Origin: Azolla caroliniana | Lineage: Eukaryota > Plantae > Polypodiophyta | NCBI GenBank assembly: GCA_043228905.1 | Contig: JBHGNT010000020.1 | Location: 4,960,001-5,024,000, forward strand | DNA: 64,000 bases | Reading direction: 5' to 3' | Part shown: positions 9,825 through 46,699 of the stretch, in pieces | How the letters are laid out: the number at the start of each line of letters is the position of its first letter | Numbering within the stretch: position 1 is the first letter of the stretch | Notes under the pieces: model-generated | Seen by the model: the letters and a program-made list of their open reading frames with translations, nothing else | What the model was told of the DNA's origin: nothing | Databases searched by the model: none | Position numbers and translations under genes: made by a program

Positions 9825-12800
9825 TCAACACTCTCCCTCAAGCTCAACTTGAGGTTCCGCCTGCTCTGTCGGACCTACGCTCCGGCTTCTCCTAGCTCCA
9901 CGCCTCGCTCGCGCTCCTCGGCCTATTCGACTCCGAGCGCTTCGACCCTTCTGGTCGGCTTGTCTGCTCCCACGGCCCTTCACAGGTCCCTTGCTGTCGC
10001 GGTGTTGGCGCTTCTCCTGCTGCCTTCTTTCCCGCTTGGCCCTCAATTGATTCAGTGTATCTGAATCAAACATCCGAACTGACTCGGCTACCTCCGATCG
10101 GTTTTCGCTCTCATCCGAGTTGGCTATCTCCAACTCGTCTCTGGTCTTCTCGCCCTTGACGGCATCACCTCCCCCATGCCTGGTTGACTTTGGCTCTTTC
10201 TTTCGGCTACTCCCCTTGTGTCCGCTTTCGGACTCTTCCGCGGATCCGCTCTCGGCTCCTTCAGCCAATCCGAGGTCTTTTCCGCTCCTTTCCTACTCCC
10301 TTTCATGGTCATCTGGGACATTTCTCCCCCTCAAGTTCAGCACGTCCAAATGACGCAACCGAAGCGCACCCGAAAATTGCCGCAACTTGTCTAGACCAAG
10401 AGGCTTCGTGAAGATGTCGGCGATCTGCCGATCCGTCGGAACATATTGAAATTCGACTTCACTAGAAAGGACACGCTCACGGACAAAATGGTAGTGCACT
10501 TCAATGTGCTTGGTCCGTGCGTGGAAGACGGGGTTCTTCACGAGTTGGATGCTGCTGAGGTTGTCGCAGTAGATCTTCGTTGGATCGGACACCTCCACCT
10601 GCAGATCCTTAAGTAGCCGCTTCAACCATATGGCTTCGCATGTTGCGACAGCCGCTCCTCTATACTCGGCTTCGGTGCTTAACACTGCAACTATCGGTTG
10701 TTTCTTGCAACTCCACGCTATCGCGGCACTCCCAAGAGAGAACGCATGTCAAGACGTGGATCGGCGATCGGCGACATTGCCGGCCCAGTCGGCATCAGTG
10801 TAGCCGACCAACTGCGGGGCTGTATCGGTCCGATATAGCAGTCCGCGGTCCTTAGTGCCGCTTACGTACTGCAGTACGCGTTGCGCACACTGAATGTGCT
10901 CCTCGGTAGGTCGCGCCATGAACTGACTGATCACCCCGACCGGATAACTGAGATCGGGTCGGGTGATTGTCAAGTAGATAAGGCTTCCGACAACTTGTCG
11001 GAACCTTGTTGGATCGCAAACCTTGCCGGAATTGGGGCGAAGCTTGACAGTTCTATCCAGAGGAATCGAGACGGACTTACAGTCTGCCATCCCGAATTTG
11101 AAGAGCATATTCAGCGCGTAATGACATTGGCTGATTAGTATGCCTTCGGGGGTGCGGATCACTTCGATCCCAAGGAAGTAATGAAAGTCCCCCAGATCCT
11201 TCATGTCGAATAATGCCGGAAGTTGGAGCTTCACGCGGTTGTTCTCACCTAGGTCGGCGCCGATGATGACCAAGTCATCAACATAGAGTAAAATACTGAC
11301 CAGCCCGAGTCGACCTTTCCGAATGAACAACGAGGAGTTCGATTTTGACGTCGCAAAGCCCATCCGACGCAGTCGATGCGTGATTTTCGCATTCCAGGCA
11401 CGCGGGGCTTGCTTCAGTCTGTAAAGGGACTTCTTCAATCGGCATACTGCCAACGTGTTCGGTCCGGAGTGAAATCCAGGGGGTTGTACCATGTACAGTT
11501 GGTCCTCAAGCTCACCTTGCAGGAATGCATTCTTTACATCCATCTGATGGAGGTGCCACCCTTTGGCCGCGGCTACTGCGAACAAAACACGGACGGTCGT
11601 CATCTTTGCGACCGGCGTGAACGTCTCATCGTAGTCGATGCCGTGTTTCTGCGCGTAGCCTTTTGCCACTAACCGGGCCTTGTATCGGTTAACTGAGCCG
11701 TCGGTGTTGTACTTGACCTTGTACACCCACCTACATCTGATCGGCTTCACACCCTTCAGTGCGTCAACCAGGTCCCAGGTCTCGTTTTCCGCCAATGCGT
11801 GCATCTCTTCCTCCATCGCGGCGCGCCAATTCGCGTCCTTTGCCGCTTCTGCGTAGCTCCCCGGCTCACGCACTTCCGCTACACGGGTCATGTACGCATA
11901 GTGATGCACCATGCACTCGTTGTATCCAAACCGCACAACTGGGTTCTTTTGGCGGGTAAATCGGCGTAATTGGTTATTAGCTGATGTCGAGGTCTTCTCG
12001 GCCGACGTGGACTTCGTTCCTGAAGGCCCGTCACCGCTTCCCTTGGAGTCGGACACGCGTCCGATTGACTCGTTCCTATCCGTGCCGGAATGCGACACCT
12101 TCTTCTTCCCTTTCTCTTCGCGCGTAAGCCGTCTCCTCAGCTTCCTACGCGGGGAATGCACGGCCGAGTCTCTACTACTCGCCGTCTCTTCATCGAACTG
12201 GTCGTACTGACTCAATCGTCCATTCGATCCACTTAACCGAACCGAAATCAGACTCTCTTCGGGGGTCCCAATTTCAAGCTCAACCAGAGGAACCTCGGCC
12301 TCGCTGTCCTCATCGTCAGAACTCAGATTGGAGGTGAGGTCCAGAGTCGGAGGCAAGTACCAGGACGCGGACTCATCAAACACAACGTCGCGGCTCACGC
12401 GCGGGCGGTTGTTTGGTACGCGGGTTATAGCACTTATAATCCTTCTGCTCGTCCGAATAGCCGACCAAGATACACTTCTCGGCTTTTGCGTCCAACTTCC
12501 TCCTTTTCTCCTTCGGCACATGTACATATGCAATGCTACCGAAAACTCGTAAGTATCGCAAGTTCGGCTTTGTTCCAAAGTATAGCTCGTACGCCGACAC
12601 TTTTTCTCCGATCCGGTTTTGGATGTATACTGCAGTTCTTACCACCTCGGCCCAATAGAACTTGGGCAACCTCTTCTCCTCCAGCATTGCGCGTGCAACT
12701 TCCACAACTGACCAATTTTTTCTCTCGGCCATGCCATTTTGCTCCGGCATGTATCTACAACTGAATTCGCGCTGAATTCCCATCTGTTGTAGATAACTGT

Positions 12801-14623
12801 TGAATTGACCGGAAAAGTATTCTTTTCCGCCAACCGACCGCAGGCACTTGATCTTTCTTCCTGTTTCCATTTCCACGAACCCTTTGAGGTCTCGGAAACA
12901 GTCGAAGACTTCGCTTTTCCTCTCAATGAGGTAGATCCACGTGTGCCGCGCGTGTAGTCGTCGATGAAGGAGACAAAATATCGGCTCCCGCCAAGACTAA
13001 CGTTTTGTGCCGGCCCCCACACATCAGAGTGTATCAAGTCTAGCTTGTTCCGGCTCCGATTACGCTCGTTTGGGAAAGGAAGTCGGTGTTGCTTCCCAAG
13101 CTGGCAGGCTTCACAAATTTGTGCCTTCCGGCCACTAAATTTGGGCAATCCAAACACCACTTGTTTCGATTGCAGGTCTTGAAGCCGCTGGTAGTTGACG
13201 TAGCCTATCCGTTTGTGCCATAAGTCGATATCCGACTTGACTTTTTGTCCCTTCGCGAACATTGCGGTGCCACCGTCAGTAGATTCGAGGATAAACATCC
13301 TCCCATCTCTGCGCCCTTGCGCAATAATATGGCCTTCTTCCTCAATGAAGCACCCAAGATGCGTAAACCGAACCTGCATCCCCTGGTCGACGATCTGCCC
13401 GACCGACACCAGATTCTTCGTGATGGTCGGGACGTGTAACACGTTCGTAAGTTTCCATTTCTGCCCGACATGGCTCAAGGGAACATCACCGACATTCGCG
13501 ATCAGATGGGGAGTATCGTCTCCAGTTGCGACTATTCCTGGTTGCGTCGGTTTCTCAAGGTATGAGAACCACTCCTTTTGGCACGTCATGTGGTTTGACG
13601 CGCCGGAGTCGACATACCACACCTCGTCTGATTTCGGGGCAGACTGTTTCATTGGGTTTGCTTCGTTTCGTGTCTCATCACGAAGACTGACCCTTTTCCG
13701 GCTTTTCCGGATCCTTCGACGTAGTGCGATCGTTGCCGATTTCCTTTGTCGGTATGTCCGGAACCAGACCTCTTCGACTCGGCGCACTTCTTCCAGCACT
13801 CGCTCTCCCTGTGGCCTTTCTTGCCACAGTACCAGCATTCCGTGGCAGATTTCCCTTTCTGGTTCTCGTCGCCTCGACTCCCCCTGTTTCCAGAGGGTTC
13901 GGAATTGCTGTCGGTATCACTTCGGTGCTTTCTTCCTTGATCCCGTCGGCTGCCTCCATTGCGTACCGACTCGCCTCATCCGCTAGGACCACGGGGTCTT
14001 TCTCCCTCCGTGTACAACATCTTGTTGTCGGTTTGCATGCTCGTCGACACACCCGCGTGGTTCTCCTCTACCAGGAGCATCGATTGTAAGTCGAAAAAGG
14101 ACGGCGTATTCTCCCGGGTACACACTGTAGTTCGGAACGCCCCGAACTTTGACGCCAAACCCTAGAGACAGACCTGGACCATCTCCCTTTCGTCGATGTT
14201 CACATCGATGGAGGCTAAGGAGTCGCATATTTCCTTAATCCTCGAGGTATAGTTAGCCACCGACAAATCGCGTTGTTGTAGGTTGCTCAACTCCTGTCGA
14301 AGCTGAAGCTTCCTGGCTGTGGTGCTCGCGACGAAAATCTTCTTTAGATTTTCCCATGCACCCTTCGGCATTTTTGCATCCCGAACGTAGCTTAGCAATT
14401 GTTCACCCACACAAGACGCGAAGCAATATAGCACTTTGCTCGCCAATTGTTTCCACGCCGGGAAGTCTTTGTGTGTCGAATCGGGTGCTGTGTCATTTGC
14501 TCCATCGACATAGCTCCAGTAACCGTGTCCAAGCAGGTACTGGTGCATCTTGTAGGACCAAGATGCGTAGTTGGTTCTGTCGAGCTTCTCCGTTGGAAGC
14601 GAGCTAGCCATTCCTCTATCCAT
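9825..14623 (-). pseudogene. C1 gag-PR-INT-RT-RNaseH polyprotein with frameshifts/stops and a charged C-terminal extension
   Basis: WYVDSGASNH (PR), DLIHSDVWGP (INT), YVDD (RT), YTDADWAG and TKHIEVHYH (RH), split over several ORFs. Confidence 0.93.
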
Positions 14624-14692
14624 CGGTTTTCTTGTTCTTCTTCGTTGGTTTTTCCTTCAAGCAAAGTCAGTTGCAGAGGTTCTCAACCCTCA

Positions 14693-14705
14693 CGCTCTGA
14701 TACCA
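14693..14705 (-). promoter_or_regulatory. C1 primer-binding site, tRNA-iMet
   Basis: TGGTATCAGAGCG directly after the 5' LTR. Confidence 0.93.
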
Positions 14706-15122
14706 TGAAAAGAATGGCGTGCTGAAGCAATATAGGAAAACCGAACAACAGAAAACGCAGGTTTAATGGAAAGCTTAGGTTTTCATAGTACGCACAGGAG
14801 AGACAGAGAGAGAGTAACACAAGAACTTAAATTCGAAAATAATACTCAATCTGTACATAAGATGTGCTCAGTGAGCACTTTTATACAAGCCCTGACAACG
14901 GCTGACAGTACTTGACTGCTCATAAACGAGCCTCGACACTTACTCCCAAAACTATTCCTTACGAGGAATATCTTTCTAACGGCCTTTCGGTCTACGCACC
15001 GATACGGCCTTTCTACGCACCGGTCTGCGTACCGGTTTTATGCACCCAGTCTACGCACTGGTTACGCATCATATTACGCACAAATGTTGAGCTTGTCTCT
15101 CAACAGAAGTCGATCGGCATGA

Positions 15123-15412
15123 CTGCTCTGATTGGGCCTCTAGTAGCGTTTACCTGAACTCGGAGACTCGGAACTTGGAACTCGGGGACACGTGGCCTCC
15201 TTCGTGGCGTCATCCGTGAACTGGTCCATGTCGTGGGACTCGGCAAAGGGATTATATGGGGTATCTCCGAGGTAAGGTCGAAGTCGGAATCCATTTATCC
15301 AGCATTTGACGATGTCTCCGGCAAGTGTGACGAGTTGGAATGTGTCGTTAAACTCGTCAATTATCTAGAAGGGGCCTGTCCATTGGAATCGTAATTTCCC
15401 CGGCATAGCACC
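15123..15412 (-). repeat. Templated filler DNA at a deletion junction (copies of ~9381-9439 and ~8188-8417)
   Basis: Direct sequence match to two G2 integrase segments, with short microhomologies at the joins. Confidence 0.85.
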
Positions 15413-17043
15413 AGTGCCGGTGCTGCGGCAAGAGCCTCCTTCATCTTTCGGACTGACTCCGCATGCTCGTCTCGCCACTCGAATTTTCGCCCCTTCTTCA
15501 GCAACCCGCATAGCAGCTCGGCAACGTGGGCGTAATGCGGGATCCATATGTGGTAGAACGCGCATGCTCCCAAGAACCTCCGTACCTCTGTGACCGAGTT
15601 ACAATCAGGCTTCATAGCAGACATGGCTTCCACCTTGGCCGAAGATGGTTTCCGGCCATACGGTCCGCATAGATGTCCGACGACCATGATCTCTGATTGC
15701 CCGAAGGCCGATTTCTCCCCGGAGAAGGTGAGCCTCGCGTCCTCTAGCCTCTGCAGCACCCTCTCGCAGTCGTCAACGTGTGTCGCCACGAATTTCCGGC
15801 ATCTGTCCGGTCCGATCGTTTCGTCCTTGTCTTCCACCGGACATCCCTTGATCGGGATATCGTCCAAGAACGGCATGGTGATGTCCGGGATACAATCCCT
15901 CAGCACGTTGTTCATCGCATTCACCATGTGGGCCACCGAGTTCGTCCCTCCTTGTGGCAGGGTACACATCCACACTAGGCCGAGAGGAGTCCGCATCGTC
16001 GTAATGTCTCTGCTCTCTATGGCTAGTTGGAACTGATCGTACCCCGAGTACAGATCACCGACCGAGTAGATCGACCTTCTGGCGAAGGCCTCCGCGAACT
16101 CGTCTATCGTTGGACCGATTCCTGCGTTCCGAATGGTCACTCTATTGACCGGTTGCAGGTCTTGAATGAAGCGCAACGTCCCGTTCTTCTTTGGTACGGT
16201 AAACCACCGGTTCGAGTACGGGGCACTCGACGGTTCGAGGATGCCCATATCAATTTTCTGCCTTAACAGCTCCATCAGCTTCGGGATGTGAGCTCTCGGT
16301 ATCAAAATTGGCTTGAGATTCCACGGCACATGCGGTACCGTGAATATCACCATCGGTTTCACGACTGTCGGGTCTACGCACCCGATCTCTTCCGGTGAGA
16401 ATGCGAAGGCTTTCCCGTGCCTTCCGAGCATTCTCCGAAACCGGTCTTCTTCCGCCGGCAGTAGGAACCCGCCCCCACCGATTTTGAGCTCCCGTAGCGT
16501 TCTGTCGGTGAAGGCGTGCCCTATGCAGGCCGGATCTCGTAAACTAGGGTCCGACACGACCCCCTTGATTCGCAACTCGCTGCCCTCCGGTAAGGGTGCC
16601 GCGACTGGCCTCACCTTCCGGTCCACCGTCTTGTACTTCGTGTTAACCCGGGCTGTCCGATCCGATTCGAGCCCTCGACTGAAGTCCGCGATGACTTCGT
16701 ACATCTCTTCTGAACAAACCGATATCGTCCGGTCCTCTTTAAGGCCCTCTTCGACCACCTCTCGCAGTATTCCCAAGGTATCGTCGAAGGAGACCGCCTC
16801 CACGGCTCCGTTGATTTCCTCGCTGGGCCCGAGAACTCCGTACGCCCGAAGTCTCTCTTCCGCCCTTGTCTTTTCTCGGCCTACGACGCTGACTATCGTA
16901 CACCCTCCGTTGTCGGAGAAACAAAACTTCCTACTTATGGTACAAGGTTTCTTTGGCTTCGCTTCTATCGTACATTTGTGGGGTTTTCCCGGAGTGTCTG
17001 GACTGTCGCGGCCCCACGCCTTGGCAGCCATCTCTAAAAATCC
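15413..17043 (-). CDS. Y1 pol (reverse transcriptase), truncated after the RT thumb/connection
   Basis: ORF 15361-17343 with gypsy RT motifs (DLYSGYDQ, FLDD, VRRFLG). Confidence 0.9.
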
Positions 17044-18680
17044 TCTCGGTTCTCGCCACCGAGGGACTCGCGGTTTCACTCGTGGTTCGGTCGTACTGTC
17101 AGGAACTGGACCGAATGTCGCCCGTCCTGAGTTTTGACCCTTGCGTAAGCCGACCCGTTGTCCAACACCTTGGTCTCCATTCGCGCTGCCGTAATGTACG
17201 GTTCTCCTAGTATGATCGGGTGCGAGGACGTTTCCTGCACAAAGAAGTGCTGGTCTATCTCGACGTCGCCGATCTTGACTCGCACGTTTGGGCAGGCCCC
17301 GTGTAGTTCCTCGGTGGCGCGCGTCGCCGCCCGTATCTTCCACCCATGCTTAGTGTTGATCGGCCATTTCCCCTTCTTGTACAAGTCCATGGACATCAGG
17401 TTTATTTCCGAACCGTGGTCCACCAGCGCCACCACCGGTTCCTGAACATCTCCAATCTTCACCGGGGTTTCCGTGGTCACTCGGGCCCAGTGTGGCCTCG
17501 AATAGTGGCTCTCCGCCCACTCGTCTTCCAGCGCCATGTCCTCTATGTGCGCCGTCCGCACCTCCACCGGCCTTTCCGGTTCTGCCTCCGTCGATAGCCT
17601 CTTCCTCTTCACCAAGTCCACGATGGAGTTGTGGAACTCCTTCTTGGCGATTTTGAGCACCTCCCGCAACGACAGTTCCACCTTGTTGTCGAGGATTCGT
17701 TCTTCCAGGACCTTTCGTAAGTCCGTGGTTCTTTCGATCTCCGTGCCCAAACGGTATCCGCCCTTCTTGTGGTTATCCCGGGCACTGGACTCACCAGCCT
17801 CGTTCCGTTTCGGCCCGAATCGGGTTTCGTATCTTTGTGAGGGTCCGGCCCCTCTGGTTTTACCTACTCGTTTGTCTTCGACCAGAGCCTCGTAGTTCTG
17901 GCAAGCTGCTTCGACGAAACTCGTCTTTTCTTCGACCGGGTCACTCCACCCGGTTACCTCCTGGACCCGCTTCTCCGCGCAGTCCGCCTTGTCTCTCTTT
18001 AGTCGGGCACCGGCGAGGCCTTCCAGCACCATCGGCCAGAACTCGGGTTTGCTCTCCTTCCGGGCCTCGCTGCCTCCGACCCGAATACCGGTTGACGCTG
18101 AGTAGTGGACGGTCTCCGCGTGCCGGGCCGCTGCCTCTTCCATCAGCCTTTTCATTCCTCCTCGCCCATCATTTCGGTTCAGGGCCCTCCTGGTATCGCT
18201 GGCGTGCACCCGACCTTCCCACAGGTACACTACCCGGCTTCTCAAAGCCTCCATAAAGTCCCCGCAGTCTTTTCGGATGTGGCCGACCTCGTCGTTGTTG
18301 GCCGGTCAGAAGAGCAAGGACAAGTGGGAAGGCGGATCGGATAATAGGAAGTAATAGTAGAATTATTATTCGGAGGGACGGATTCGGTACAGTTGTACCG
18401 ATCCGGATCCGAACCGATTCGGATGTCGGTTGCCTAAGCGCACCGATTGTAACCTTGCCGGATGCCTATAAAAGGATCCGATGATTTGTAAAGTGTTCGA
18501 CGGAAGTAATACAATAGTAATTGTCGTGTATTTATCTGTATCTCGTATTGTTTGCCGTCCGTGCTTAATTGTAATCATCTTATGCGTGTAACCTAGCATC
18601 CAATCCTTACCACCCCTTTGGAGAAGTGTCGGGTAGACACCTGTGTTGAGGCTAGTCCGGCCAGACAGACAACACTATTT

Positions 18681-18691
18681 TGGCGACCACG
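18681..18691 (+). promoter_or_regulatory. G1 PBS, complementary to the tRNA-Arg(UCG) 3' end
   Basis: TGGCGACCAC(G), 6 nt after the 5' LTR. Same motif and spacing in G4 (40941-40951, minus strand). Confidence 0.75.
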
Positions 18692-18726
18692 ATTCCTGCA
18701 AAGTGCAGAGGACAACCGGGGGATGG

Positions 18727-21700
18727 ATGTCTAGACCAAATGACGACCACATCACCGAACGAGGGAGACGATACACCGAACGCGAGCAACGACGGGAAGC
18801 CCTGCAGCAAGCCGTCGACGAGATCCGGCGGGATCGATCATTCTCCAAAACTCTTCGGAGAGTCGCAGAAGAAGCACTACAGTTCCGGGTTCTGCAAATC
18901 CCCGACGAAGGCAGTAGCATAACAAGCCTGCAAGAGGCGGAAACGATACTGCAGACGCTCGCCGCGGGCGACGGGGACTCGGAAGCATTCGCAACACTTG
19001 AGGCGGAGTCGGAAAGCGACGGAAGCGTTGCATCCCGGTATAAAAGCAGCCACGACACACCAAACGACCGGGAGGACGAGGGGTCGGAAGACTCAGTAAC
19101 ACCGGCGCCAGAGGAAGAAATAACCCTGGAATTCGGTGACCGGCAACCGCCGAGGAAGGCTGACCGGATACCGACAACAACCGCGAGGGAACCGAAGGAG
19201 CGGATACCGACAACACCCGTGGAGGAACCAACGGACCGGACACCGGCAACACCCGCGGAGGAACCAAAGGTTCGCACACCAACGCCAACAGCGGATAGGG
19301 AACAGGAGAGTCAGTTGGACGACACGATGTCGTACCCATACCCAAAGTACCGGGATGAGGCCGACGCGGAGGCACATGTGTACGCATTCCTCCAAACATG
19401 GGAAGCCAACCATATCTCCCAAAGACTGACGGAGCCCGAAGCCGAACGATCCAAAATCGCCGAATTCGGCATAACCTTAGAAGGACCGGCGGCCCAATGG
19501 CACGCAAAGCACTTACCAGGCACCTTTGCCACATTCGATGCCTTGAAGGCCAGATTCCTCAGGTTTTTTCACAGACAATTTGAGCAAAGGGAATTGGTCG
19601 GGCAGTTCTACACCACCCGGCAAGAAGAAAACGAGACTATGCCACAATTCATCATTCGGTTCCAGACCCTGCACAGCCAACTGACAAGAGCACCACCCGA
19701 AGACGAAGCCAAAGCAGTCTTTTTGGCCGCGCTGAAAGAGCCACTTCGAACAATGTGCGGAGTCCTTGATTTCCAAACCAGCACAATGGACCAAGTTATT
19801 GATCGGGTTTTAGAAATGGACAAGACTAGCCCCTTCTTGTCGATGGGGATGTTACACCGGGCACTCCCAAAAGAGGAAGACCTGAGGTTCCGACAGGCCT
19901 TACAATGTACAACATGCCTAAATTCGGGGCACTCAACAGTAGACTGCACCCTGCGGACACAATGTGTGATCTGCAACTCTCGAGCCCATACAACGGACCG
20001 ATGCGAATACAACCTGTTAAATCGGCAGGCAGCACCGGTTCGACACATAGAACCGCGCAATCAGAACCCGGACGAGGATCGATTCCGGAGAGACGACCGC
20101 TACCAACGCGAACGCGGTAACAGATACGCTGATAGAAGACGCGACAACTATGACCGAGAGGAGAGACGCAGAGATAGCTACCCCCGGGACCGGTATGACA
20201 GAGACGAATCCCCGGAAGACGACAGACGCGGAGAAGAGAGGCGACAAGGATACGCTGATAGAAGACGCGACAACTATGACCGAGAGGAGAGACGCAAAGA
20301 AAGCTACCCCCGGGACCGGTACGACCGAGACGGAGCCCCGGAATACGACCGACGCGGAGAAGAAAGGCGACAAGGGAACCGAAATTTCCGACGGAATCAA
20401 AAGCGTGGATTTTTCCGAAGAGAGGAACGTCGGGAGGCAGCAAGGAATGACAACCCGGTATCCGTACCGGATAACCGAAAAACCGAAGACGACCGCCGGA
20501 GCATACCCACCCTCCAAACCGGGGACAAAGGAGAAACGAGCAACAGTCACAAGGTGTACTGTTATTACTGCCGCAAGGAAGGCCACTATAGTAACCAATG
20601 CCCAAGCAAAAGCTATGACAAGCAGCCGGAAGTCAACATGGTTACAGCCGAAATAACAGAAGTACAGCAGGTCACAACCCGGTCAAAGGGAAAGACCGCC
20701 GAGTGGGAGGACCAGGAGGCAATCAGAAAACAAGCGACACAATGGATCAAGGAGGCCAATGAACAGAATGCGGCAAAAGTAAGAGACCAAAATATGCCAC
20801 AAGACGAAGAAATCATACAGCCAGGCGAGAACCCGACGTGGCAAGCGCTACAGGACTGTCAAATCGTGTTGTCGTTAGCACGACTACTACAGTTAGTGCC
20901 ACGATTTACGGCAGACCTACAGGCATCCGTCAGCAAACCGAAGCCGACGCCAGCACCGGCATTCTTCTCCAACCCGGAGGAAGGACCAGCGGTGGTCGAT
21001 ACAAGTAGCCCGGCAATCACGACAATCGTGAAAGGAAAGGAAATTGCTGGAACGATTATTGACGGAGGCTCTAGGGTAAATGTCATCAGCCAACAGACAT
21101 GCAACGACCTGGGCATTCGGGAATGGGAACCATGCCCCTTCTGGTTACGCATGGCGGATACTAGCTCAGTCCGACCGACCGGGCTTATCCGGGATTTGGA
21201 AATCACGATCGGAGGCCACGTATTCCGGATATCGGCCGTGGTGCTGCAGCTGAATGTACAAGGCGCGTACCCCCTACTGCTAGGACGACCATGGCTGCGA
21301 ACGGCGCATATCAAGCAGAACTGGCAAAAGAACATGATCACATTCCGGCGAGGGAAAACAAAGGTACGAGTAACGACGCAACCATGGGTGATCACCAGTA
21401 AGGAAGCAACTCCATTGTATGCGGAAAGCATTAACATGTTGGAGGGATTACCGGACGAGGAAGTCAAGCGGTACCTAGAGGAACACCCACGAATCGTCCC
21501 ACTATTTGAGGTGGATATTACGGCGGCAGTAGAACCGTACATTACGACGTCGGAAGAACCGGACCAAGCGGCGATCCGGGAACTACGACAAGCGCAGGAA
21601 TCCCTAGAGAGGGAAATGACGATATCCCAGAGGGTAAAAGCATCCCAACTCGAGGAGGTGGACCTCGGCACAGCAGACAAGCCCCGACCAGTAAATGTTG

Positions 21701-24633
21701 CAAAGGAATTGCCGAAGGAAGAAAAGAAGGCAATGGTAGCATTGTTAACAGACTTCAAGGATGTGTTCGCGTGGTCGTACGAAGACATGCGAGGGCTGGA
21801 CCCCCAGCTCTATCAGCACCAAATTCACCTAAGTACGGACGCGAAACCGATTGCTCAACGCAGGTACCGGATGAATCCGAATTATGCGGCAAAGGTGAAG
21901 GAGGAAATTGATAAGCTCCTCCGGGTCAGATTTATCCGACCGGTCAAGCAGGCAACCTGGCTAAGTCCGATAGTGGTGGTCCCGAAAAAGAACGGAAAAA
22001 TCCGGGTATGCGTGGACTACCGAAAACTAAATGCCGCGACAGTGACCGATGCGTTTCCACTACCATTTACGGACGGGGTGTTAGATGCGGTAGCCGGGCA
22101 CGAAGTTTACAGCTTCCTGGATGGATTTAGCGGCTACAACCAAATACGAATGAACCCGGCTGACCAAGAGAAGACAGCGTTCGTGACGGAATGGGGAGTG
22201 TTCGTCGCGGTAGTGATGATGTTCGGACTAAAGACGGCTCCAGCGACCTTTCAAAGGATAATAATGGAAATTTTCGGGGAATATATCCCCGGTTTTATGC
22301 AGGTCTTCCTTGACGATTTCGCGGTCTACAGCCGGCACGGAGAGCATCTCGATCACCTCCGGCTGTGCTTGGAGAAGTGCCGCGAGTACCGATTGAGCCT
22401 GAATCCGGCCAAGTGCGTCTTTGGAGTGGCAAGCGGCAACTTGCTAGGGCACGTGGTGAGTAAGGAAGGAATCGCGGTAGATCCGGATAAAGTCAAGGCG
22501 ATTCTCGATGCACCAGCACCAAGTAACGCAAAGGCTTTAAGCCGGTTCCTGGGCCAAATAAGGTGGCATAGCCGGATGATACGGCACCTCGCGGACTTCG
22601 CTACACCGTTACATACCGCCGTACATAGGGTACCCTTCCTATGGGCAGAGACGGAGGAGGAAGCCTACAAAGCGTTGAAGGTCATGCTGTCGCAAGCTCC
22701 GGTGGTGCAACCGCCGGATTGGAGTAAAAGCTTTCACGTCTTCGTCGACGCGTCGGACGTAGCAATCGGCAGCGTTCTGATGCAACTCACAGAGCCGAAA
22801 TGGTACCGACCGGTGTACTACGCAAGCCGGAAACTCTCAAAAGCCGAACGGAATTACTCTACGACGGAACGCGAGGCATTGGGAATGGTGTATAGTGTCA
22901 CAAAGTACAGGCACTATCTGCTCGGAAGGAAGTTTTCCTTCCATGTCGACCATTCGGCACTACTCTACTTGGTCTCGAAGGCATCCCTGACGGGAAAAAT
23001 TGCACGGTGGACACTACTACTACAGGAATTTGAATTCGACATTTTCCACCGACCCGGGGCATAGCATGCGGTAGCGGACTATCTAAGCAGACTTGAATCC
23101 GGAGAAGCAGGGGACGGCGTCCAGGATGAGTTTCCCGACGCCGAATTGTTCCGGATCACGACGAAACCGGCAACGGATACAACGGTAGCCGACGAAGACA
23201 CATGGCTAACTGAGATGCACCAGTTCCTGAGCACCGGAGTTCCCCCGGACAACATGGACCGCGATGAAAGGAAAAGGGTAGCAGTAAGAAGTAGACATTT
23301 CTGCTTGGTTGGAGACACCCTCTATCACAAGGGGGCAGATGGCATCTGGAGGCGAGCAGTGCGGAGCGATGAGAAGGATCTAATCCTCAAGGAAGCCCCG
23401 GACAACATGGACCGCGATGAAAGGAAAAGGGTAGCAGTAAGAAGTAGACATTTCTGCTTGGTTGGAGACACCCTCTATCACAAGGGGGCAGATGGCATCT
23501 GGAGGCGAGCAGTGCGGAGCGATGAGAAGGATCTAATCCTCAGGGAAGCCCACTGTGGAATTGCCGGCGGGCATTATGCCAGCGACACAACCGCTCGGAA
23601 AATATGGCAGAGCGGACTGTGGTGGCCGACCACCCTAAAAGATGCCGTGAAGTATAGCAGAGAATGCGATTTGTGTCAACGACTGGGCCAACCCACAGAG
23701 CAGGCCCGGATGCCACACCACCCGGTCTTGCCCTTAGAACCGTTTCAAAAGTGGGGGTTGGACTTTGTCGGTCCCTTCAAACCACCGGCAATGCGAACCG
23801 GAAATCGGTATGTCATAGTGGCGACCGACTATTGCACCAAATGGGTAGAAGCAAAGGCCTTACGGGACAACACGGCCGCTTCCACGGCAAAGTTTCTGTA
23901 CGAATGCATATGGTGCCGGTATGGATGCCCGATCGAGCTTATAAGTGACCAAGGAGGACATTTTCTTGGGCAGGTAGTAGAAAGCCTGACGTCATTTTAC
24001 GCGGTGGTACATAAAAAGAGTACACCCTACTACCCTCAAGCCAATGGACTAGTGGAATCAACGAACAAAACTCTGCAGAACATCCTACGAAAAATCGTCA
24101 ACGAGAACCGGACCGACTGGGATACGAAATTGCAAAGCGCGCTATGGGCGTACCGAACAACGTACAAAACCAGCATCCGGACAACCCCGTTCCGACTAGC
24201 ATTCGGGTTAGAAGCGGTCATGCCGGTAGAGTTCCAGATCCCCAGCTTACGGATTCAGATAAAGGAGCGCTTAAGTGAGAACGAGTCCGAACGAATCCGA
24301 CTGGCAACGCTGTTGGAATTAGAGGAAAACCGAATAGCCAGCTTACTACAACTCGAACTGGAGCAAAGGAGGAGAAAAGCCTTCGTGGACCGACACCGGC
24401 GTGGCAATGAAAAGGAGTTCGAAGTCGGGAAACCGGTGCTACTATTCCAGACAAGGATGGGGAACATGCCGGGAAAGTTGCGGTTTCGATGGACCGGACC
24501 GTTCTGGATCACCAAGGAGTACAATGGGTCGTATCAGCTCTGCACGTTGTCTGGAGATGTCATCGGCAAGTGGGCAAATGGATTTCGGCTAAAGCCGTAT
24601 AAAGGAAATATGCCAGCCAACCCGTTCAAGTGA
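18727..24633 (+). CDS. G1 Gag-Pol (gag, 3 CCHC knuckles, PR, RT, RNase H, integrase); one premature TAG at 23062 and a 153-bp in-frame duplication
   Basis: IIDGGS (PR), FLDD (RT), VDASD and TTERE (RH), HCG..GGH…C..C and WGLDFVGP (INT), WTGPF (GPY/F). No chromodomain. Confidence 0.95.
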
Positions 24634-25004
24634 AACCCGGAAATCCGGCAAGAGGAAGAACCGACACCGACAGACGCTGCTGAAGACATTCGGACCGAGG
24701 AAGAACCGACACCGATACTGACGATGACCATCCCGGAAAACCGACACGAACCGACCCGAACAAAGCGGGGGGGACCAGCAAATGACGTGGTCCAAGCAAA
24801 AAAAAAAGAAAAAAAAAAAAAAAAAAAAAAGACGTGGGCAGAATTGACGCGAATCATCGTAATGATGGGGAGATCACAAGAGGTGGGAGCGCCACCATGC
24901 AACGAAGAGGCGCCATGCATTAAAGAAAGACGTGTGCGCACTTGCTATTTAAAGCAGAGAACGTGGGCACTCACACGCGGCAAACAAGAAAGGACATACT
25001 AATT

Positions 25005-28000
25005 ATGGCGGGAGAGGAACATGCGGGGGAAACGAAAAAGGACGGCTCGAGGCACAACCCACTATATAAGACACAGGCCTGCGAAGGGCTCACGTTTTAC
25101 GAATTTTCCTACATACAGGCGCAGAAGCACAGAAGAGCGACCCGACGCACAGAGCACACACAGCGCGATCCCGAACACCAGGCAGCAGACGAAGAATTCG
25201 AAGCAATGGTACTGTCGGAAGAGGCACGCCAATGGATGAGGGAGAACGGGTTAAAAGGCTTGCTGCGGATCGCCGACGCTCCACCACACGCAGAACCAGA
25301 GCAGGCGGCAGCATCGATCGATATATCAGAAGTCACGGAAGGAGCGGTGCAGGCACTCACGGGGATCAAAGCAGGAGGACTGCAAACAATCGAAAACCCT
25401 TCCAGTGAAATCCTGTTCGAATATTTCAGGGAATACTCTATCACCAGCAAGGCGTACCGAACGCAGGGCGGAGAGAACCTGCTGTTCGGAGAAGTAGCCC
25501 GCGCTATGATGGAATACGGATTCGTGAATCCCCGTCCCCCAGCCATAGCCAAGTATCGGGCAGCATTCTTGATAGCAGCGTACGAGGGCTTACAAATAGA
25601 CTGGCTCCATTTCATAACCGAAGGATTGAAGGAGGCCATCAAAAATCTGGTGGAAGGAAAAAGGCCATGGGCCGGGATAGCACAATGGCTAACGGTGTTA
25701 GTCCCACCGGTACTCCCCATCACACAAAAGAAAAGAGGTCGGCAGGAGACGACGCCGAAACAGGTCACAAAGCGCCGACAGATCTTGGAGAAACACACCC
25801 CCGGATGGACCCCGCAAGAAGCAGAACAGCAGGGGGAAGGACCATCCCGACAGCAACAGGAACCGGCCACAAAGGCAAAACCGGCAGGTAAAGGCAAAGG
25901 GAAAGCGGCTGAGGAGGAACCGGTAGCGCACAAACCAATCCATATAACGCTGCGACGGCCGGAACCGGAACCAGAGATCTCTAGACAAAAGGTCCGTCTG
26001 GTACCCACACCGGAGGAGGAAACTGAAACTGAAGACTCATCCGAACCCCTGGTAAGACTCCCAGCAAGACAAGGTCGGGAGAAACGGGCGAAAGGACCGG
26101 CTCCACCAGTGGACAGAACTCAGCAGAGGGCGCAAGGACCATCTCCAGTAGCCGAGGCGGAAATAGCACCGGAACCTGTACCCAGGGAAGCAGCACCGAC
26201 ACCGGTTGGGCCGGACTTCAAAAAACCGGTCATCCCAGAGAAGAAGAAGGAACGAGCGCCGGAGCCAGAGCCAGAGAAGAGGCCGGAAAATCAGCCTGGC
26301 TTAAGTGAGAAAGGCCACCCCGAAATCGGAAGAACAAAGCCACAATGGCTGAGATGGCTTTCGGAGCAGTTATCGGGAGTAGCGGACCAGTTAGAGAAAG
26401 AAGAAACGTGTCGGCAACAGCTGACGCATACAACAACGCAGGAGTTGGTCGCGCTCCGAACACAGATCGAGGAAATGCAAGGGGAGCTGTTGCAGGCAAG
26501 GGAAGGAATCCAACAAGCACAAGCTGTCACCGAGCCGGTCGGGACAACAAGGAAGCAACCAGAACCGGAACCGGAACCGGTAGCCTTGCAAACCGGCCCT
26601 GAGACCGAAAAAATAATAGAAACCTTACGAGAGGAGTTACAAGCTCAGGAGGCATTAAGGGAAAGAGAAAGGGAGCAGCGGAAAGCGGTGGAGGATGACA
26701 GACGAAAAATGGAAGAAGGCCTCCGGAAAGGTCGAGCCGCTAATGACCGACTGCAAGAAGAAAAAGAGAAGTTGCAGAAGGAGAAGGACCGACTACGTCG
26801 ACATGCCGAACAAGAGATAGAACGACTGCAGGAAGAACTCCGACAACAGAAGGACCGGGACGATCGGTTAAGAGCTCAGACAACCCGACGCCTGAAGTAG
26901 AAGACGGAGGACTTCGACCGTCTCTACAGAGATCACAAGCAGGCCGAGTCGGACAACAAAAAACGAGCAGCAGACTACGACCGGCAAATAGAGAAGCTGA
27001 AAGAGCAGGTCAAAGAGACCCGATTAGACCTGGCTAAGGCGATGGATGAGGTCAGTGCCAACAAGGAAGCATTGTCGGCGGAAATAGCCCAAGCAACGGA
27101 GAGAAGGAAGGAATTAGAGGCGCTAAGGCGGGAAAAGCTGGACCTGACCAAGATCAGGAATGAAGAAAAGGAAAAATCGACCTTCACGATCAGCAAACTG
27201 CAGAGTACCTATGAAAAGCAGAAAGCAGATTAAGAGGCCCAGGCTCAGATAATGGCCGACATTATAAAACGGGCAAGGAAGGAAAAGCAGGAAGCTTATG
27301 CGCATGCTAAGGCAGGAGTTGACCGGATCAAGCTCATCATGTCAGGATGGAGTACCCGAGCTCAGGCAAGTATCAACGAAAGTACGGAAAAGCTATGGAA
27401 GGAGTGGTCACAACAGGCAGCCGAGCTGCAGACACTCCGAGCGGATGCTGAGAATCGGAAGAAGACCGGCGACAGGTTCTACAAGATGGATGAAGAAAGT
27501 ATCGTCGCCATTCGGGAGGAATTGTCGGAGGATTTCTACACTTTAGCAGAAGAACACCTCAAAGAAATCCGAGGGTTGGTAGAGAGGTTGGATGACGGGC
27601 AGCTCGCAACTCAGTTGGAGTTGGAGAGATACGAGCAGGACCGGGTACGACAGGAAGCTAAGGGAAGAACGACGCCAACCACTATTGGTGAGGGAACGCG
27701 ACCAGATGAAGAGGAACCAACCGACACCGAACAACCCTGACAAGGAATAGGCATATCAAGTCGACCAGTCGAGACCGGAGAAAGCGACACCGGTAACAGA
27801 ACAGAGCCAGGAACGGAGGGAGAACAGGAAGAACCCGGACGAAGCGGTGAGGAAGCACCGGCACCACGGAATCAAGCAGAGCCGGAGCAGAAAATTTTTA
27901 CGGAACAGCCTACCCAACAGGAGGTCGGAGACCAGGCAGGCAAGGAACAGGAACAGGAGGAAGAAGCACCACTTGACACTATCGAGCAAAGTGTGCTCGA

Positions 28001-28019
28001 TATTTTGGAGGAAGACTGA
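25005..28019 (+). pseudogene. G1 extra ORF2, ancestrally ~1004 aa, with three in-frame stops (26898, 27231, 27738)
   Basis: One frame from ATG 25005 to TGA 28017. Each stop is explicable as one C>T change. Homologous to G2 ORF2. Confidence 0.88.
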
Positions 28020-28027
28020 GGCCGGGT

Positions 28028-28067
28028 GTGGATTCGAAGTGCAAGGCACTTTCCCACGGGCGTGCCA
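28028..28067 (+). other. tRNA-Arg(UCU)-like 3' tract (inverted second PBS) in the PPT position
   Basis: GTGGATTCGA[AGTGCAAGGCACT]TTCCCACGGGCGTGCCA, 2 nt before the 3' LTR. No purine tract present. Confidence 0.75.
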
Positions 28068-29340
28068 TGTGTTGGCCGGTCAGAAGAGCAAGGACAAGTG
28101 GGAAGGCGGATCGGATAATAGGAAGTAATAGTAGAATTATTATTCGGAGGGACGGATTCGGTACAGTTGTACCGATCCGGATCCGAACCGATTCGGATGT
28201 CGGTTGCCTAAGCGCACCGATTGTAACCTTGTCGGATGCCTATAAAAGGATCCGATGATTTGTAAAGTGTTCGACGGAAGTAATACAATAGTAATTGTCG
28301 TGTATTTATCTGTATCTCGTATTGTTTGCCGTCCGTGCTTAATTGTAATCATCTTATGCGTGTAACCTAGCATCCAATCCTTACCACCCCTTTGGAGAAG
28401 TGTCGGGTAGACACCTGTGTTGAGGCTAGTCCGGCCAGACAGACAACAGTCGCACCACATGCACCTATTTCCTGCCGGTGGCCAACGGTCACGAGCCTAA
28501 TCGCCGCCTTCCCTCCGAGCCTGGGCGATCTGGAGATCCTTTACCGCTCGTGTCAACTCCTCCAAAGCTGCTCCCCCGGACGAGCCTCTGACCACGCCGG
28601 TCGAAGCCGAACCGGTCTCGAGCCACTCCCGGGTCTCTTCCCTTCGCGCCTGCGGTATCGGTTCGAGCTTCCTTGCTGCGACAGGTCCCGCCCCGGTCGC
28701 CTCTGTATCAGCCCACTCCCACCGTTTGTCAAAACGGCCGCAGACTCTTTTTACCGCGGCCCAGTCGGCCGTCAACCCGTCTTCGGTTTCCAGTAAGGAG
28801 CCCACATGCCCCCGATCTCGTGCGTCAACCGATTTGACAAACAGTAGGACAAGACTTGTGTCCACAACGGTCCGATCGAGCGCCGAAAGGCGTGCAAAGC
28901 GTTCCTCAAACTCCCGGAGGAGTACCGACGCATTTCTTCCTTTGTTAGGGGACTCCACCCACTCCATGAAGCCCCGCTTCGAAAGTCGAAGCGCGTCATC
29001 CAGCCCGTATTTCTCCAAGAGCCGTCCTTCGAACTCCTCCCAGGTCCGGCTCTCTACCCGGACTTGGAGCACCTCTGCATGGATGCCCGACATCGCCACT
29101 CGAGGGAATCCGGCAAGACGCCTCTCTTCCGGAATATCCCTCATCAACATCTCCGCCCGGTAGGACGCCAAATAACTCGTGGCATCCTTTCCACTGAACC
29201 GGCCGATCATACCGACGATCGCCTCAATAGCCCTGTCAAGGGCTCCGGTGCCCTCACGCGCGCTCACTATCCGGTCCACGGCCGAAGCCATGGCCTCTGC
29301 AAGATCTGACCCCCTCATCTTCTGCTCCTCTACCGCCTGT

Positions 29341-38897: not shown

Positions 38898-39770
38898 TAT
38901 TGGGAAGTCGGTCTCTCCAGATGGGATCCGGTTATGAATGAAGAGGACCCGGTGAGAACCGGATCAGATGGACCTGGTAGAACCGGAAGAGAAGACATAT
39001 TTGTAAATATGTTTTGAGTAAGCCTATTGAGGCTATATTTGTAAATAGCCCTAAGTTCATATGAGTATAAATATGACCTAGGGCAATCACAATAGATAGT
39101 GTGTGTTGTCATATTGTTGTATGTGCATAACTGTTGTATAAAGAGAGAGAGATACAAAGCGATACTCTGTTGTAACCGCCGCTTGGCGAAGATATAGAAC
39201 TCAAGGTTGTTGCCTCCGAGTCTCTGATTGTACCAAATGTATATTCATTACATGCCCATAAGGGGTTTATATAATACATCCAATGTAACGGTTACATGAC
39301 CGTTATAAATAAGACCGTTACGCATTCTTGTACACATGCACATAATTGTGCATGTGTCCATACACATACTCATCCTCACACACTCATTTACTTTACACAT
39401 ACACATCAACCACATCATTACACCTACCCTTATGCCTCCTCGTATATTCTTACGGCTAACAATCTCTCCGTTGGTCATCATACCAGTATCCACCCTTTAG
39501 TCTATAACGGTCCTCTCGTTGGAACCAAACCTCATCCGGTTGTCGGTCATCCCGTGGTTCAATCTGTCTTGACTGTTCGGGTACCGCCTATCACCTCTTC
39601 TCCGGTCATATTCCGGAGAGTAATCTCTTTTGTAACGATCCCAGATATAATCGTCTCTTTGTCGGTCATCATACTAGTATCCACCCTTTAGTTTATAGTA
39701 GTCCTCCCGTCGGAACCGATCCTCATCCGGTTGTCGGTCATCTCGGGGTTCAATCTGTCCTGATTGGCGC
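38898..39770. repeat. LTR-like fragments plus an internal ~120-bp diverged duplication (~39470-39580 / ~39660-39765)
   Basis: TATA-containing LTR-like composition; visible direct repeat CTAGTATCCACCCTTTAG…GGTTCAATCTGT. Confidence 0.45.
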
Positions 39771-39779
39771 TACCTACCG

Positions 39780-41411
39780 ATTTAATCAATTGTACTCACA
39801 TCGGTCCATGGTGTGTGCCTTGGAGTGACATAGCAAACATTGTGTCCGCATTGTACATTCTACAATGGAATGGTCAGGGCTGAGACATGTTGTACATTGC
39901 ACTGCATGTCAGAATCGTAGGTCCTCCTCCCATCGCCATGTAATTCCCGTTCTGGGCTTGATCCATTTCGAGAACCCGATCAATGACTTTCGTCGATGGT
40001 GCTTGTCCGGAAATCCAACACTACTAACATAGACTGGAGTGGCCCCCAGATTGCAGCCAAAAATACTGCCTTAGCTTCATCCTCCAGGGGTGCTCTTGTC
40101 AGTTGGTTGTGCAACATTTGGAACTGGATGATAGATTGAGGTACGATTTCGTTGGGTTCTTGACACATAGTATAGAACCATCCAACTAACTCTCTCTGCA
40201 CCACCTATTGATGAAACAACTACAAAAACTTATCCCATAGAGCCGAAAATGTAGTGAAGGTCCCCGGCAGGTGTTTTGCATGCCATCATGCCACCAGTCC
40301 TTCCAGTGATAGCCCAAATTCGGTTATTTTCGATCTTTTGGTTTCTGCTTCTGTTAATCGTTGTGAGACCGATTCCAATTCCGATAAAGGTTCCTATGCC
40401 AGTGGTGTCGGTATGCATTCACCTTCCTCCTCTGGTTGTTGTTCCGGAATCTCTTCTTCCAGTCGCATTGGTTCAACCACCGCCTTCGGTGGTGTTGGAA
40501 TCGGGATTTCTTGTTTCGTTGGTGTTGGTAACGGAGTTTTCGACTCTAGTGTGTGCTCTGATCCGTCTTCCTTCGGCTCGTTCGGGGGTGTCGTGACTGG
40601 ATCCGTAATTCAAGTGGATGTTGTTTGATCCCGACTCGAGTGCCGAAAAGGCCTCCGAATCTCCAGTGCATGTTGCTAAATTCTATAATATCGATTCGAC
40701 GTCGAGTAGATAAGGTTGCTTCCTTCGTCTAAGTGTCGTTGATTTTGTATTCAGATCATTTTTTCCACGACCCACCAGAGCACTTTGGGCAAAGATCGAT
40801 CCTACCGGATCTCTTGTGCCACTTGTTGGTACTCTTCCCTCCTTCGCAGTCGTTCAGCTAATCTTCTCGCTCGCTCGACTACTAGGTTGTTCGTATGCCT
40901 AGACATCCATTCCCCATTGTTCATTGCTCTATGTAGGAATCGTGGTCGCCAAAATTGTGTTTATCTTGGGCCGGACTAGCCGCAAACACAGGGTGTCCTA
41001 TCCAAAACACATATCCAAAGGGGTGGTAAGGATATGGATGATTATCCGGTACTGATCCGACAAATTATATACAAGACTCCGGCTACCGGATCGCTTAATA
41101 CATATCTTATCCATAATTGTATGTGTATTAGTAATAATTACATCGCAGACGGTCGTCCACAAGAGAGACAATAACATTAACAAGAACCACGCTTAAGCCT
41201 GTATTACTTCCGTAAAGTTTATACATCGATCCAGATCCTTTTATAGGCATCCGGTAAATATTACAAAACGGTGCCTTACTGGCTACCAGCTACTATTCAG
41301 TGCAGATCCGAATCCATCCATTCCTATAAAATTACTAACTAATATTTACATTATTCAATGGACTCTTTCCCGTCCACACTTCTCCTTTGGATCATACTCC
41401 TAGGGCCAACA
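39780..41411 (-). mobile_element. G4: 5' end of a G1-family gypsy (5' LTR 40958-41411, PBS, degenerate gag)
   Basis: QRELVGWFYT…LHNQLTRAPLEDEAKAVFLAA matches G1 gag. PBS TGGCGACCACGATTCCT. Confidence 0.85.
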
Positions 41412-45700: not shown

Positions 45701-45925
45701 TCGACCATGCTTTCCACATCTCTTCAATCGAGCCCAATCCTTGCATGAATTTCTCTCACAACCACGATATGCACTCTCGATTGCAACATTCATTGGTAAA
45801 GTTCTTGAACATCGAGAGTCGCTACTCACCTTCACACGTATCACGTGAAATGTAATATTTTTGGTCTCATAGGTCATATTTGACCCCGGAAGATGATAAT
45901 ATAGTTTATCTATCTATCTATCTCT
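42746..45925 (+). mobile_element. RTE/RTEX-like non-LTR retrotransposon, decayed; no endonuclease domain visible
   Basis: RT motifs QAGFR, FVDFKK.FD, GVKQGCPLSP, YADD. C-terminal LSSHALRCETG..W…CTLC…EHHTLIQC zinc finger. (ATCT)n tail. Confidence 0.88.
44588..45131 (-). mobile_element. Solo LTR (same family as 8443-9237) inside the LINE, left end imprecise
   Basis: Shares AGTACGTGTA..GGGGTCTTGGACTAGGG and the GGAAATCTTCACGACA end. Confidence 0.85.

Positions 45926-45926
<1 letters not shown>

Positions 45927-45972
<46 letters not shown>
45927..45972 (+). repeat. (CA)n microsatellite; a second one at ~46631-46697
   Basis: Direct observation. Confidence 0.97.
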
Positions 45973-45976
<4 letters not shown>

Positions 45977-46204
45977 GTTCTTTCGCTGCACAGAATCGTC
46001 ACCGATTCCCTATAGGAATAGTCGACCATTTTTTATATTAATAGTTCTTTGTCTTTTGGTGCTCTCTATGTGTATGTGTATTGTCTCCATCTTAGAAGGT
46101 TAACCTCCATCTCTGTATTCTGTCATATCGTCCTATCTATGTGGTATACTAGTCGCTCGGTTCTGCCGGTTGTGTACATCAACTTTTGCATTCTTCACAT
46201 TAAA

Positions 46205-46625
46205 GAGGGGATACCATTTGAGTGTTGGGAAAGGTACTTGCTTATCTCGGCTTCATCCATCCCCTCAAGCATATCAACACCTTCTTAGTATAGAGAACTG
46301 ATAGTGGGGCTATGTTGGCACCTTGAATGTGGTGGCTCTAGTATTCCTTATGGGCGGGGCAATCATGTCACTTTGACAATATTATTAATCCAAATGATTC
46401 TAGGATAAGTTGAAATAACAACTATCTTGAATAACGTGCACAATGATAGTTGTAGTGGCCTCGATAATCAGGTGGCATGACTTGATACGGAGGAGCCATA
46501 GGAGAGTATGTTGCTACATCCAAACCAGGATGCATTCCATTATGGTTTCTAGGTTGAGTTGGTGAAATCCATGAGTCCAATCTTGAGTGTGACGTGGTTT
46601 GTTGAGGGAATTCCTTCTCGCATAA

Positions 46626-46630
<5 letters not shown>
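46205..46630 (-). pseudogene. G5: highly degenerate G1-family protease-region fragment
   Basis: LY*EGVDMLEGMDEAEISKYLSQHSNGIPLF aligns with G1 LYAESINMLEGLPDEEVKRYLEEHPRIVPLF. Confidence 0.55.

Positions 46631-46699
<69 letters not shown>

Follow-up and report, generated by a model that had tools for sequence, protein, structure and literature searches.

A sense copy of the tRNA-Arg(UCU) 3' end in the position of the polypurine tract in a Ty3/gypsy lineage of non-seed plants, and its possible role in plus-strand priming

What primes the plus strand of an LTR retrotransposon in which no polypurine tract precedes the 3' LTR? Plus-strand priming from a polypurine tract is, to our knowledge, treated as universal for retroviruses and LTR retrotransposons. 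The tract is a usual, not a defining, feature of the Ty3/gypsy family, and annotation tools take it as a defining landmark. The question is raised by a Ty3/gypsy element, here termed G1, at 18296-28448 (+ strand) of a 64,000-nucleotide stretch of Azolla caroliniana DNA (the window; contig JBHGNT010000020.1, positions 4,960,001 to 5,024,000), for which an earlier, sequence-only reading had proposed that a second, inverted tRNA primer binding site stands where the polypurine tract is expected. The features of G1 are as follows.

18296-18674, + strand: 5' LTR, 379 bp, TGTTGG...CAACA, with a TATA box near 18468
18643-23064, + strand: gag-protease-RT-RNase H frame (Pfam Retrotrans_gag, zf-CCHC, RVT_1, RT_RNaseH)
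18675-18692, + strand: spacer CTATTT and 5' primer binding site TGGCGACCACGA (site proper 18681-18692)
23146-24633, + strand: integrase (Pfam Integrase_H2C2, rve), in the frame of the upstream ORF
24942-28019, + strand: extra ORF 3' of pol, coiled-coil-rich, with three internal in-frame stops
28028-28037, + strand: tract segment B, GTGGATTCGA, corresponding to nt 49-58 of tRNA-Arg(UCU)
28038-28050, + strand: 13-nt hairpin AGTGCAAGGCACT, inserted after nt 58
28051-28067, + strand: tract segment A, TTCCCACGGGCGTGCCA, corresponding to tRNA nt 59-76 minus nt 66, with the CCA end
28068-28069, + strand: 2-nt spacer between CCA and LTR, TG in G1 and GG, AG or TG in relatives
28070-28448, + strand: 3' LTR, 379 bp, one mismatch against the 5' LTR

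The sharp borders and near-identical LTRs that had been described for G1 were borne out, the LTR ends reading TGTTG...CAACA, while the target duplication, previously given as a 5-bp repeat, matches at four of five positions (flanks GTCGT and GTCGC). Pfam returned the Ty3/gypsy domain order gag-protease-RT-RNase H-integrase, with a weak protease match, and a tRNA primer site follows the 5' LTR. The first frame closes at an in-frame stop ahead of the integrase, and the extra ORF, a charge-rich frame of about 1000 codons with no Pfam match, ends 8 nt 5' of the tract; because of its own in-frame stops, G1 may not be autonomous. Two tandem duplications were also seen, one in gag (126 nt twice, 93% identical, 20123-20374) and one near the integrase N-terminus (153 nt twice, 99% identical, 23243-23548). 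G1 is inserted in another gypsy-like element on the minus strand (17076-18254 and 15439-16461), and the ORF on its left flank matches DUF4100 and, weakly, an aspartyl protease, with a distant RT further left.

The absence of a polypurine tract was confirmed, since the 20 nt 5' of the 3' LTR are 40% purine with a longest purine run of 3 nt, and no polypurine tract was found before the 3' LTR at the related junctions either. The closest purine-rich run, GGAGGAAGA at 28009-28017, is the end of the extra ORF, where it encodes an acidic C-terminus, and is 50 nt too distant, on the upstream side, to define the edge of the LTR. The last 42 internal bases of G1 (28028-28069) read GTGGATTCGA-AGTGCAAGGCACT-TTCCCACGGGCGTGCCA-TG, followed by TGTTGG of the 3' LTR, as had been described: on the minus strand this is the layout of a primer binding site with a 2-nt spacer, and its CCA lies exactly where a plus-strand primer must end. 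In sense, the tract reads as nt 49-76 of mature tRNA-Arg(UCU), CCA included, and being sense-oriented it has a complement on minus-strand DNA that forms a mirror-image primer binding site.

The earlier assignment to tRNA-Arg(UCU) was upheld against eukaryotic tRNA-Arg(TCT) genes in metagenome contigs (found with a T arm and acceptor scan), which end ...GATTGTGGGTTCGAGTCCCAC[C/T]GGGCGTG. The minus strand of the tract is complementary to this 3' end over its last 10 nt exactly and over 16 of 17 positions with one deletion, the contiguous match being limited to 10 nt because nt 66 is absent. The 1-nt deletion noted before is thus present in G1, and it is specific to one sublineage, two older full-length relatives (L133 and L135, described below) having kept nt 66. 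Similarly, the likeness to the tRNA 3' end holds and is wider than was first seen, since it takes in all of the T arm (nt 49-58), with an inserted hairpin: segment B comprises the 5' strand of the T stem together with the T loop as far as A58, with A at nt 53 in G1, and in some copies the likeness reaches back into the variable loop (GATT). CCA is absent from eukaryotic tRNA genes, which makes a mature tRNA the source of the tract. A 16-mer with up to three mismatches is expected by chance 0.24 times per window, and tract copies occur at three LTR junctions in the window and at every related junction retrieved; judged by sequence, the match is not a chance one.

The relatives of G1 in the window, all on the minus strand, are these.

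2500-2539, - strand: G4, a decayed third tract ending …AAGCGTGTTA, with spacer GG at 2499-2498 and the LTR (TGTTGG) running leftwards from 2497
4552-4591, - strand: tract of G2, a divergent element, whose 3' LTR runs leftwards from 4549
39611-41314, - strand: G3, a truncated relative that retains 5' LTR and gag and shares the 5' primer site of G1

The extra ORF of G2 is 36-38% identical in protein to that of G1, and the G2 hairpin stem differs by two compensatory pairs (GTGC/GCAC against GGAC/GTCC). The plus-strand match at 4552 was also considered as the ordinary 5' primer site of a plus-strand element, with the G1 tract as a captured inverted leader, and this was rejected because tblastn placed G2 on the minus strand, with its extra ORF and integrase extending down to 4550.

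Ordinary polypurine tracts are present in other elements. An element of the liverwort Riccia sorocarpa, with an RT 53% identical to that of G1, carries AAAAAGGGGA 4 nt before its LTR, and in an unrelated LTR element nested in G2 (9440-15105, minus strand) a canonical GAGGGAGAG tract abuts the LTR; the nested element has a tRNA-iMet primer site (TGGTATCAGAGC). A 59-nt stretch, longer than a target duplication, is present on both sides of the nested element (9381-9439 and 15124-15182).

Beyond the window, ENA metagenome contigs contain about 99 relatives of the final 162 aa of the extra ORF, and the closest named RT relatives are from liverworts and a fern. The tract adjoins the 3' LTR in six short metagenome contigs (L001-L004, L127 and L012) and in the two older full-length relatives. 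Among the contigs of the ORF-end group that reach the junction (L001-L004 and L127), five out of five have the tract followed by TG and TGTTGGCC; L005, L126 and L128-L131 stop short of the junction, and L132 is broken by another insertion. L133 (RT 67% identical to that of G1; LTR pair 86% identical) ends CTCCACCAGGTGTGCCA-AG before TGTTGG, and L135 (RT 61% identical; LTR pair 84% identical) ends GCCCAGCCGGGTGTGCCA-GG before TGTTGG, the LTR start of L133 being set by homology and its 5' LTR being cut by the contig start. Both tracts are altered by transitions, two of the four in L133 being at CpG sites, and L135 has one extra base. L133 carries a different, 18-nt hairpin at the same place, so that the sequence and length of the linker vary and its position at nt 58/59 is constant. 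The CCA followed by two variable nucleotides and TGTTG was present at all junctions examined (G1, G2, G4, L001-L004, L127, L012, L133 and L135), and the deletion of nt 66 was confined to one sublineage. With the Riccia element as the nearest relative that has a polypurine tract, the replacement is bracketed here by RT identities of 53% and 61%.

The nearest match for the host's own tRNA is a tRNA-Arg(TCT) gene on L012, the contig with a G2-like fragment. This complete tRNA-Arg(TCT) with CCAA (1190-1266) lies at the contig end beside the G2-like 3' end, in opposite orientation, and starts where the G2 homology ends; it may be a true gene next to the element, may have been inserted there, or may reflect a join made in assembly. 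In a further set of loci (L006-L125, from termite-gut and other JGI metagenomes), about 100 contigs have in common a tRNA-like end, GTGGGTTCGAATCCCACCGGGGCATG and then GATG or GATA, which looks like an abundant, tRNA-derived, SINE-like repeat unrelated to the tract. A scan of viral contigs gave a single chance match (L136, in GC-rich DNA).

The element is present in four DNA runs of the host, evidence that consists of contigs. Leaf metagenomes are among the other listed holders, which marks the host as a plant. Summed contig depth was highest in the bin 28044-28075 (about 278,000 in run X1); in the same run, the ORF end lay mostly at 5,000-20,000 and large parts of the LTR at 100,000-170,000. 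Within 28028-28069 one variant at ≥5% was listed in the host runs (28032 A/G); A53 was the majority form in two runs (85% and 79%) and made up about half in the two others. Host contigs leave the tract into other LTRs (ATTGTGTTACCCC... and AATGTGTTACCG...), from which it follows that several LTR families share the block, and enter it from other upstream sequences at 28027 and 28039. An ordinary polypurine tract in young copies would have spoken against the earlier proposal; the abundant young copies keep the tract instead.

These data bear on whether the tract is a non-functional relic, that is, a tRNA fragment captured once by template switching and passively carried since. Such a capture is the likely origin of the tract: a switch of template from the U3 border to the CCA end of a packaged tRNA, in the course of minus-strand synthesis, would explain both the mature CCA beside U3 and the discontinuity at nt 58, and m1A58 is known from retroviral biology to stall RT. 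Passive carriage is nonetheless very improbable, given that no other stretch varies so little or is so abundant among host copies, that the hairpin covaries, and that dead copies decay at CpGs while the tract persists across divergent lineages. Its conservation across those lineages and in very many copies thus identifies the tract, on comparative grounds, as a selected feature.

Strong conservation alone is silent on which function is selected, and a role in packaging, dimerisation, RNA stability or transport, or in regulation by tRNA-binding factors, with the plus strand primed in some other manner, was therefore weighed. tRNA-like sequences have been reported to affect mRNA behaviour in plants, and in L002 and some other copies an upstream GGCAG or GGCCG can pair with the 3' strand as an acceptor-like helix (z = -3.3). 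This pairing was not seen in G2. ARAGORN found no tRNA genes in the whole window, Rfam gave no tRNA or tRNA-like structure match in 27000-29000, and neither these programs nor the folds returned a cloverleaf or an acceptor/T-arm fold for the tract; RNA and DNA folding gave no consistent structure except the T stem and the hairpin, with RNA fold z values of -1.2, -3.3 (L002), -0.2 and +0.3 between copies. Moreover, the fixed distance of 2 nt between CCA and LTR edge is predicted by a primer 3' end and is not required by other roles, and the LTR edge has no alternative primer candidate. A function other than priming is accordingly regarded as distinctly unlikely, if far less so than a relic.

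At the other end of G1, the separate primer site that had been reported after the 5' LTR was found with a 6-nt spacer, and G3 has the identical site with spacer CAATTT (40960 region). This spacer is unusually long in G1 and G3, compared with 2 nt in L133 and L135, and would leave 6 nt for trimming at the right end. The 5' site of L133 is CT-TGGCGACTCCGCTGGGGA, of which L135 has a decayed version; it is fully complementary both to iPBS primer 2395 and to a small plant RNA ending in CCA, and we take it to be that of plant tRNA-Arg(ACG). The sites of the G1 group presumably also belong to an arginine tRNA of the tRNA-Arg(ACG) type. TGGCGACCACGA is complementary to the 12 terminal nt of human tRNA-Arg(UCG/CCG), in the sequence given by bioRxiv 10.1101/2021.02.06.430044. 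The retrieved loci yielded no further arginine tRNA genes, and the 5' primer tRNA is therefore assigned provisionally, from the human sequence, iPBS primer 2395 and the plant small RNA. By sequence comparison, the 5' primer sites match a 3' end other than that of the tract, and the G1 site shares only TGGC with it. Self-priming or pairing between the 5' and 3' regions was discounted, as neither the 5' site nor, with up to three mismatches allowed, any other part of G1 is complementary to the tract.

Since the plus strand starts at what becomes the left LTR edge, the conserved CCA two nucleotides before that edge points to a primer ending ...GCCA as the most likely one. The reading that we prefer, with a probability of roughly 0.45, is that in a lineage of Ty3/gypsy elements of non-seed plants a sense copy of tRNA-Arg(UCU) has replaced the polypurine tract and serves plus-strand priming via the host tRNA. 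A slightly more tentative proposal is that both DNA strands may be primed by host tRNAs, tRNA-Arg(UCU) for the plus strand and a second tRNA, presumably of arginine type, for the minus strand. No RNase H-resistant polypurine primer would then be needed, and the ends of the element would be mechanistic mirror images.

From the anatomy of the tract, its identity with tRNA-Arg(UCU) and its conservation, we infer a scheme in which the minus strand would be primed as usual at the 5' primer site, the site itself being what is observed. Clearing of the template RNA by RNase H would expose the complement of the tract, LTR-CA-NN-TGGCACGCCC..., as a mirror-image primer binding site, to which host tRNA-Arg(UCU), probably co-packaged with the other arginine tRNA, would anneal. 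The last 10-17 nt of the tRNA would pair with segment A and the 5' strand of its T arm with segment B, with the DNA hairpin looped out opposite the m1A58 region. RT would extend the CCA end through the 2-nt spacer into U3, thereby setting the left LTR edge; RNase H would remove the tRNA as at the other end, and integrase would trim 2 nt, as at primer-site ends.

The alternative closest to this scheme places the primer in cis: the tract of the genomic RNA would itself survive RNase H, be cut after CCA (or after CCA and 2 nt) and prime the plus strand as an unconventional, tRNA-derived polypurine tract substitute in which the host tRNA takes no part. The position of the CCA at the LTR edge serves this explanation as well as the trans-acting tRNA. 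It asks for the fewest new steps, the primer being already in place; the conserved loss of nt 66 indicates that a perfect tRNA match is dispensable, and an enzyme that already cuts at a tRNA primer end might recognise the same sequence. The G-rich core GGGCGTG or GGGTGTG also resembles the Ty1 tract, GGGTGGTA, which is short and not purely purine. A primer in cis gives no reason, however, for the anchoring of the tract to the tRNA, CCA included, across lineages at 61-67% RT identity, at which divergence polypurine tracts normally vary, and it leaves the retention of segment B and of the variable linker unexplained; the abundant A53 and the inconsistent RNA folds oppose a conserved T-arm fold. 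Priming in cis is held to be less likely than the trans-acting tRNA but close behind it, because nt 66 is missing and the G-rich core may resist RNase H.

Several features of the sequence lean weakly towards the host tRNA as primer. That the tract has stayed tied to the tRNA across 61-67% RT identity, and 36-38% identity in the G2 ORF, hints at an external reference in preference to a co-evolving signal in cis. The bipartite site (nt 59-76 and nt 49-58), with its variable linker at the unpairable m1A58, is somewhat reminiscent of primer-site complexes in which the T arm is contacted. On the plus strand, G1 and G2 depart from the tRNA by G>A or T>C changes alone (G53A, U55C, G71A and, with less certainty, G44A and U47C), and after each of them tRNA and minus-strand DNA can still form a G.T or G.U wobble, a pattern that may slightly favour pairing of the two. 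If the element's own RNA folded here, G53A would disrupt the T stem of that fold, and yet this variant is abundant. HIV-1 co-packages lysine tRNA isoacceptors, and an arginine tRNA at the 3' tract together with arginine-like 5' sites faintly suggests a similar co-packaging here.

Against the trans-acting tRNA stands the absence of nt 66 in the most successful sublineage, as selection for tRNA pairing would be expected to favour a match longer than 10 nt. The wobble argument rests on three to five substitutions, one of them CpG decay, and the G-rich core GGGCGUG could itself resist RNase H. We know of no precedent for the annealing of a folded, modified tRNA to DNA, followed by its removal from the plus strand. 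Primers in cis and in trans can be told apart by sequence, because the tract lacks nt 66 and contains the hairpin.

When compared with known systems, the minus strand of the tract resembles a canonical primer binding site in its order (LTR-CA, a 2-nt spacer and TGG..., the complement of a tRNA 3' end), and the complementarity includes the CCA when eukaryotic tRNA-Arg(TCT), not the host's own, is taken as reference. It differs from that site in lying on the opposite strand next to the 3' LTR, in its 1-nt deletion and in its hairpin linker; a canonical site is part of the genomic RNA, just 3' of the 5' LTR, whereas the tract would act on minus-strand DNA. As in the extended T-arm contacts of HIV-1 PAS and RSV U5-TψC, a second segment is complementary to the 5' strand of the T arm. 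With polypurine tracts it has in common its position directly upstream of U3 and a presumed role in the start of the plus strand, and it departs from them in base composition and in being a tRNA 3' end with CCA.

Ty3 reportedly has a bipartite primer binding site (Gabus and colleagues, 1998), and, as in the G1 group, a tRNA-related sequence lies near the 3' end of its genomic RNA. The 3' part in Ty3 is complementary to initiator tRNA and aids minus-strand priming, whereas the G1 tract has the same sense as its tRNA, so that the genomic RNA cannot bind that tRNA. In the Mauriceville retroplasmid, RT starts at the CCA of a tRNA-like 3' end, and Weiner and Maizels are said to have put forward the "genomic tag" idea, with 3' tRNA-like structures as replication tags. 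Like the tRNA-like ends of plant RNA viruses and of the Mauriceville plasmid, the tract ends in CCA and is tied to a start of synthesis; unlike such terminal structures it is internal (followed by U3-R), comprises the T arm and the 3' strand of the acceptor only, and is not folded as a tRNA. The self-priming of Tf1/Sushi and Tcn1 likewise departs from the standard primer, and a primer in cis would likewise be cut from the element's own RNA; self-priming of the Tf1 type concerns the minus strand and needs complementarity between the 5' end of the RNA and the primer site, while the tract is not complementary to the 5' site of G1. In a literature search that covered full text, with most subscription journals outside its scope, no report was found of a tRNA-derived tract replacing a polypurine tract, and a tRNA-derived tract in this position is probably new. 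Only 5' primer types are covered in the plant LTR element survey of Neumann et al. 2019.

In this very successful plant lineage a tRNA 3' end thus stands where a polypurine tract would be expected. Should plus-strand synthesis start from a tRNA or a tRNA mimic, transposition would depend on a second essential host factor, a different RNase H specificity would be needed, and the lineage would be a living example of the "genomic tag" idea, linking tRNA-like ends with the start of replication. For annotation, tools that seek a polypurine tract will score such elements as incomplete, and the inverted tract can lead annotators to the wrong element orientation.

BLASTP gave almost no similarity among the extra ORFs of the G1, L133, L135 and Riccia elements, for which reason the gain of the extra ORF cannot be linked to the loss of the polypurine tract. 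Elsewhere in the window, (CA)n microsatellites and several tandem repeat arrays with units of about 169 and about 219 nt were seen at 45911-46725, 50470-51201 and 53732-54163.
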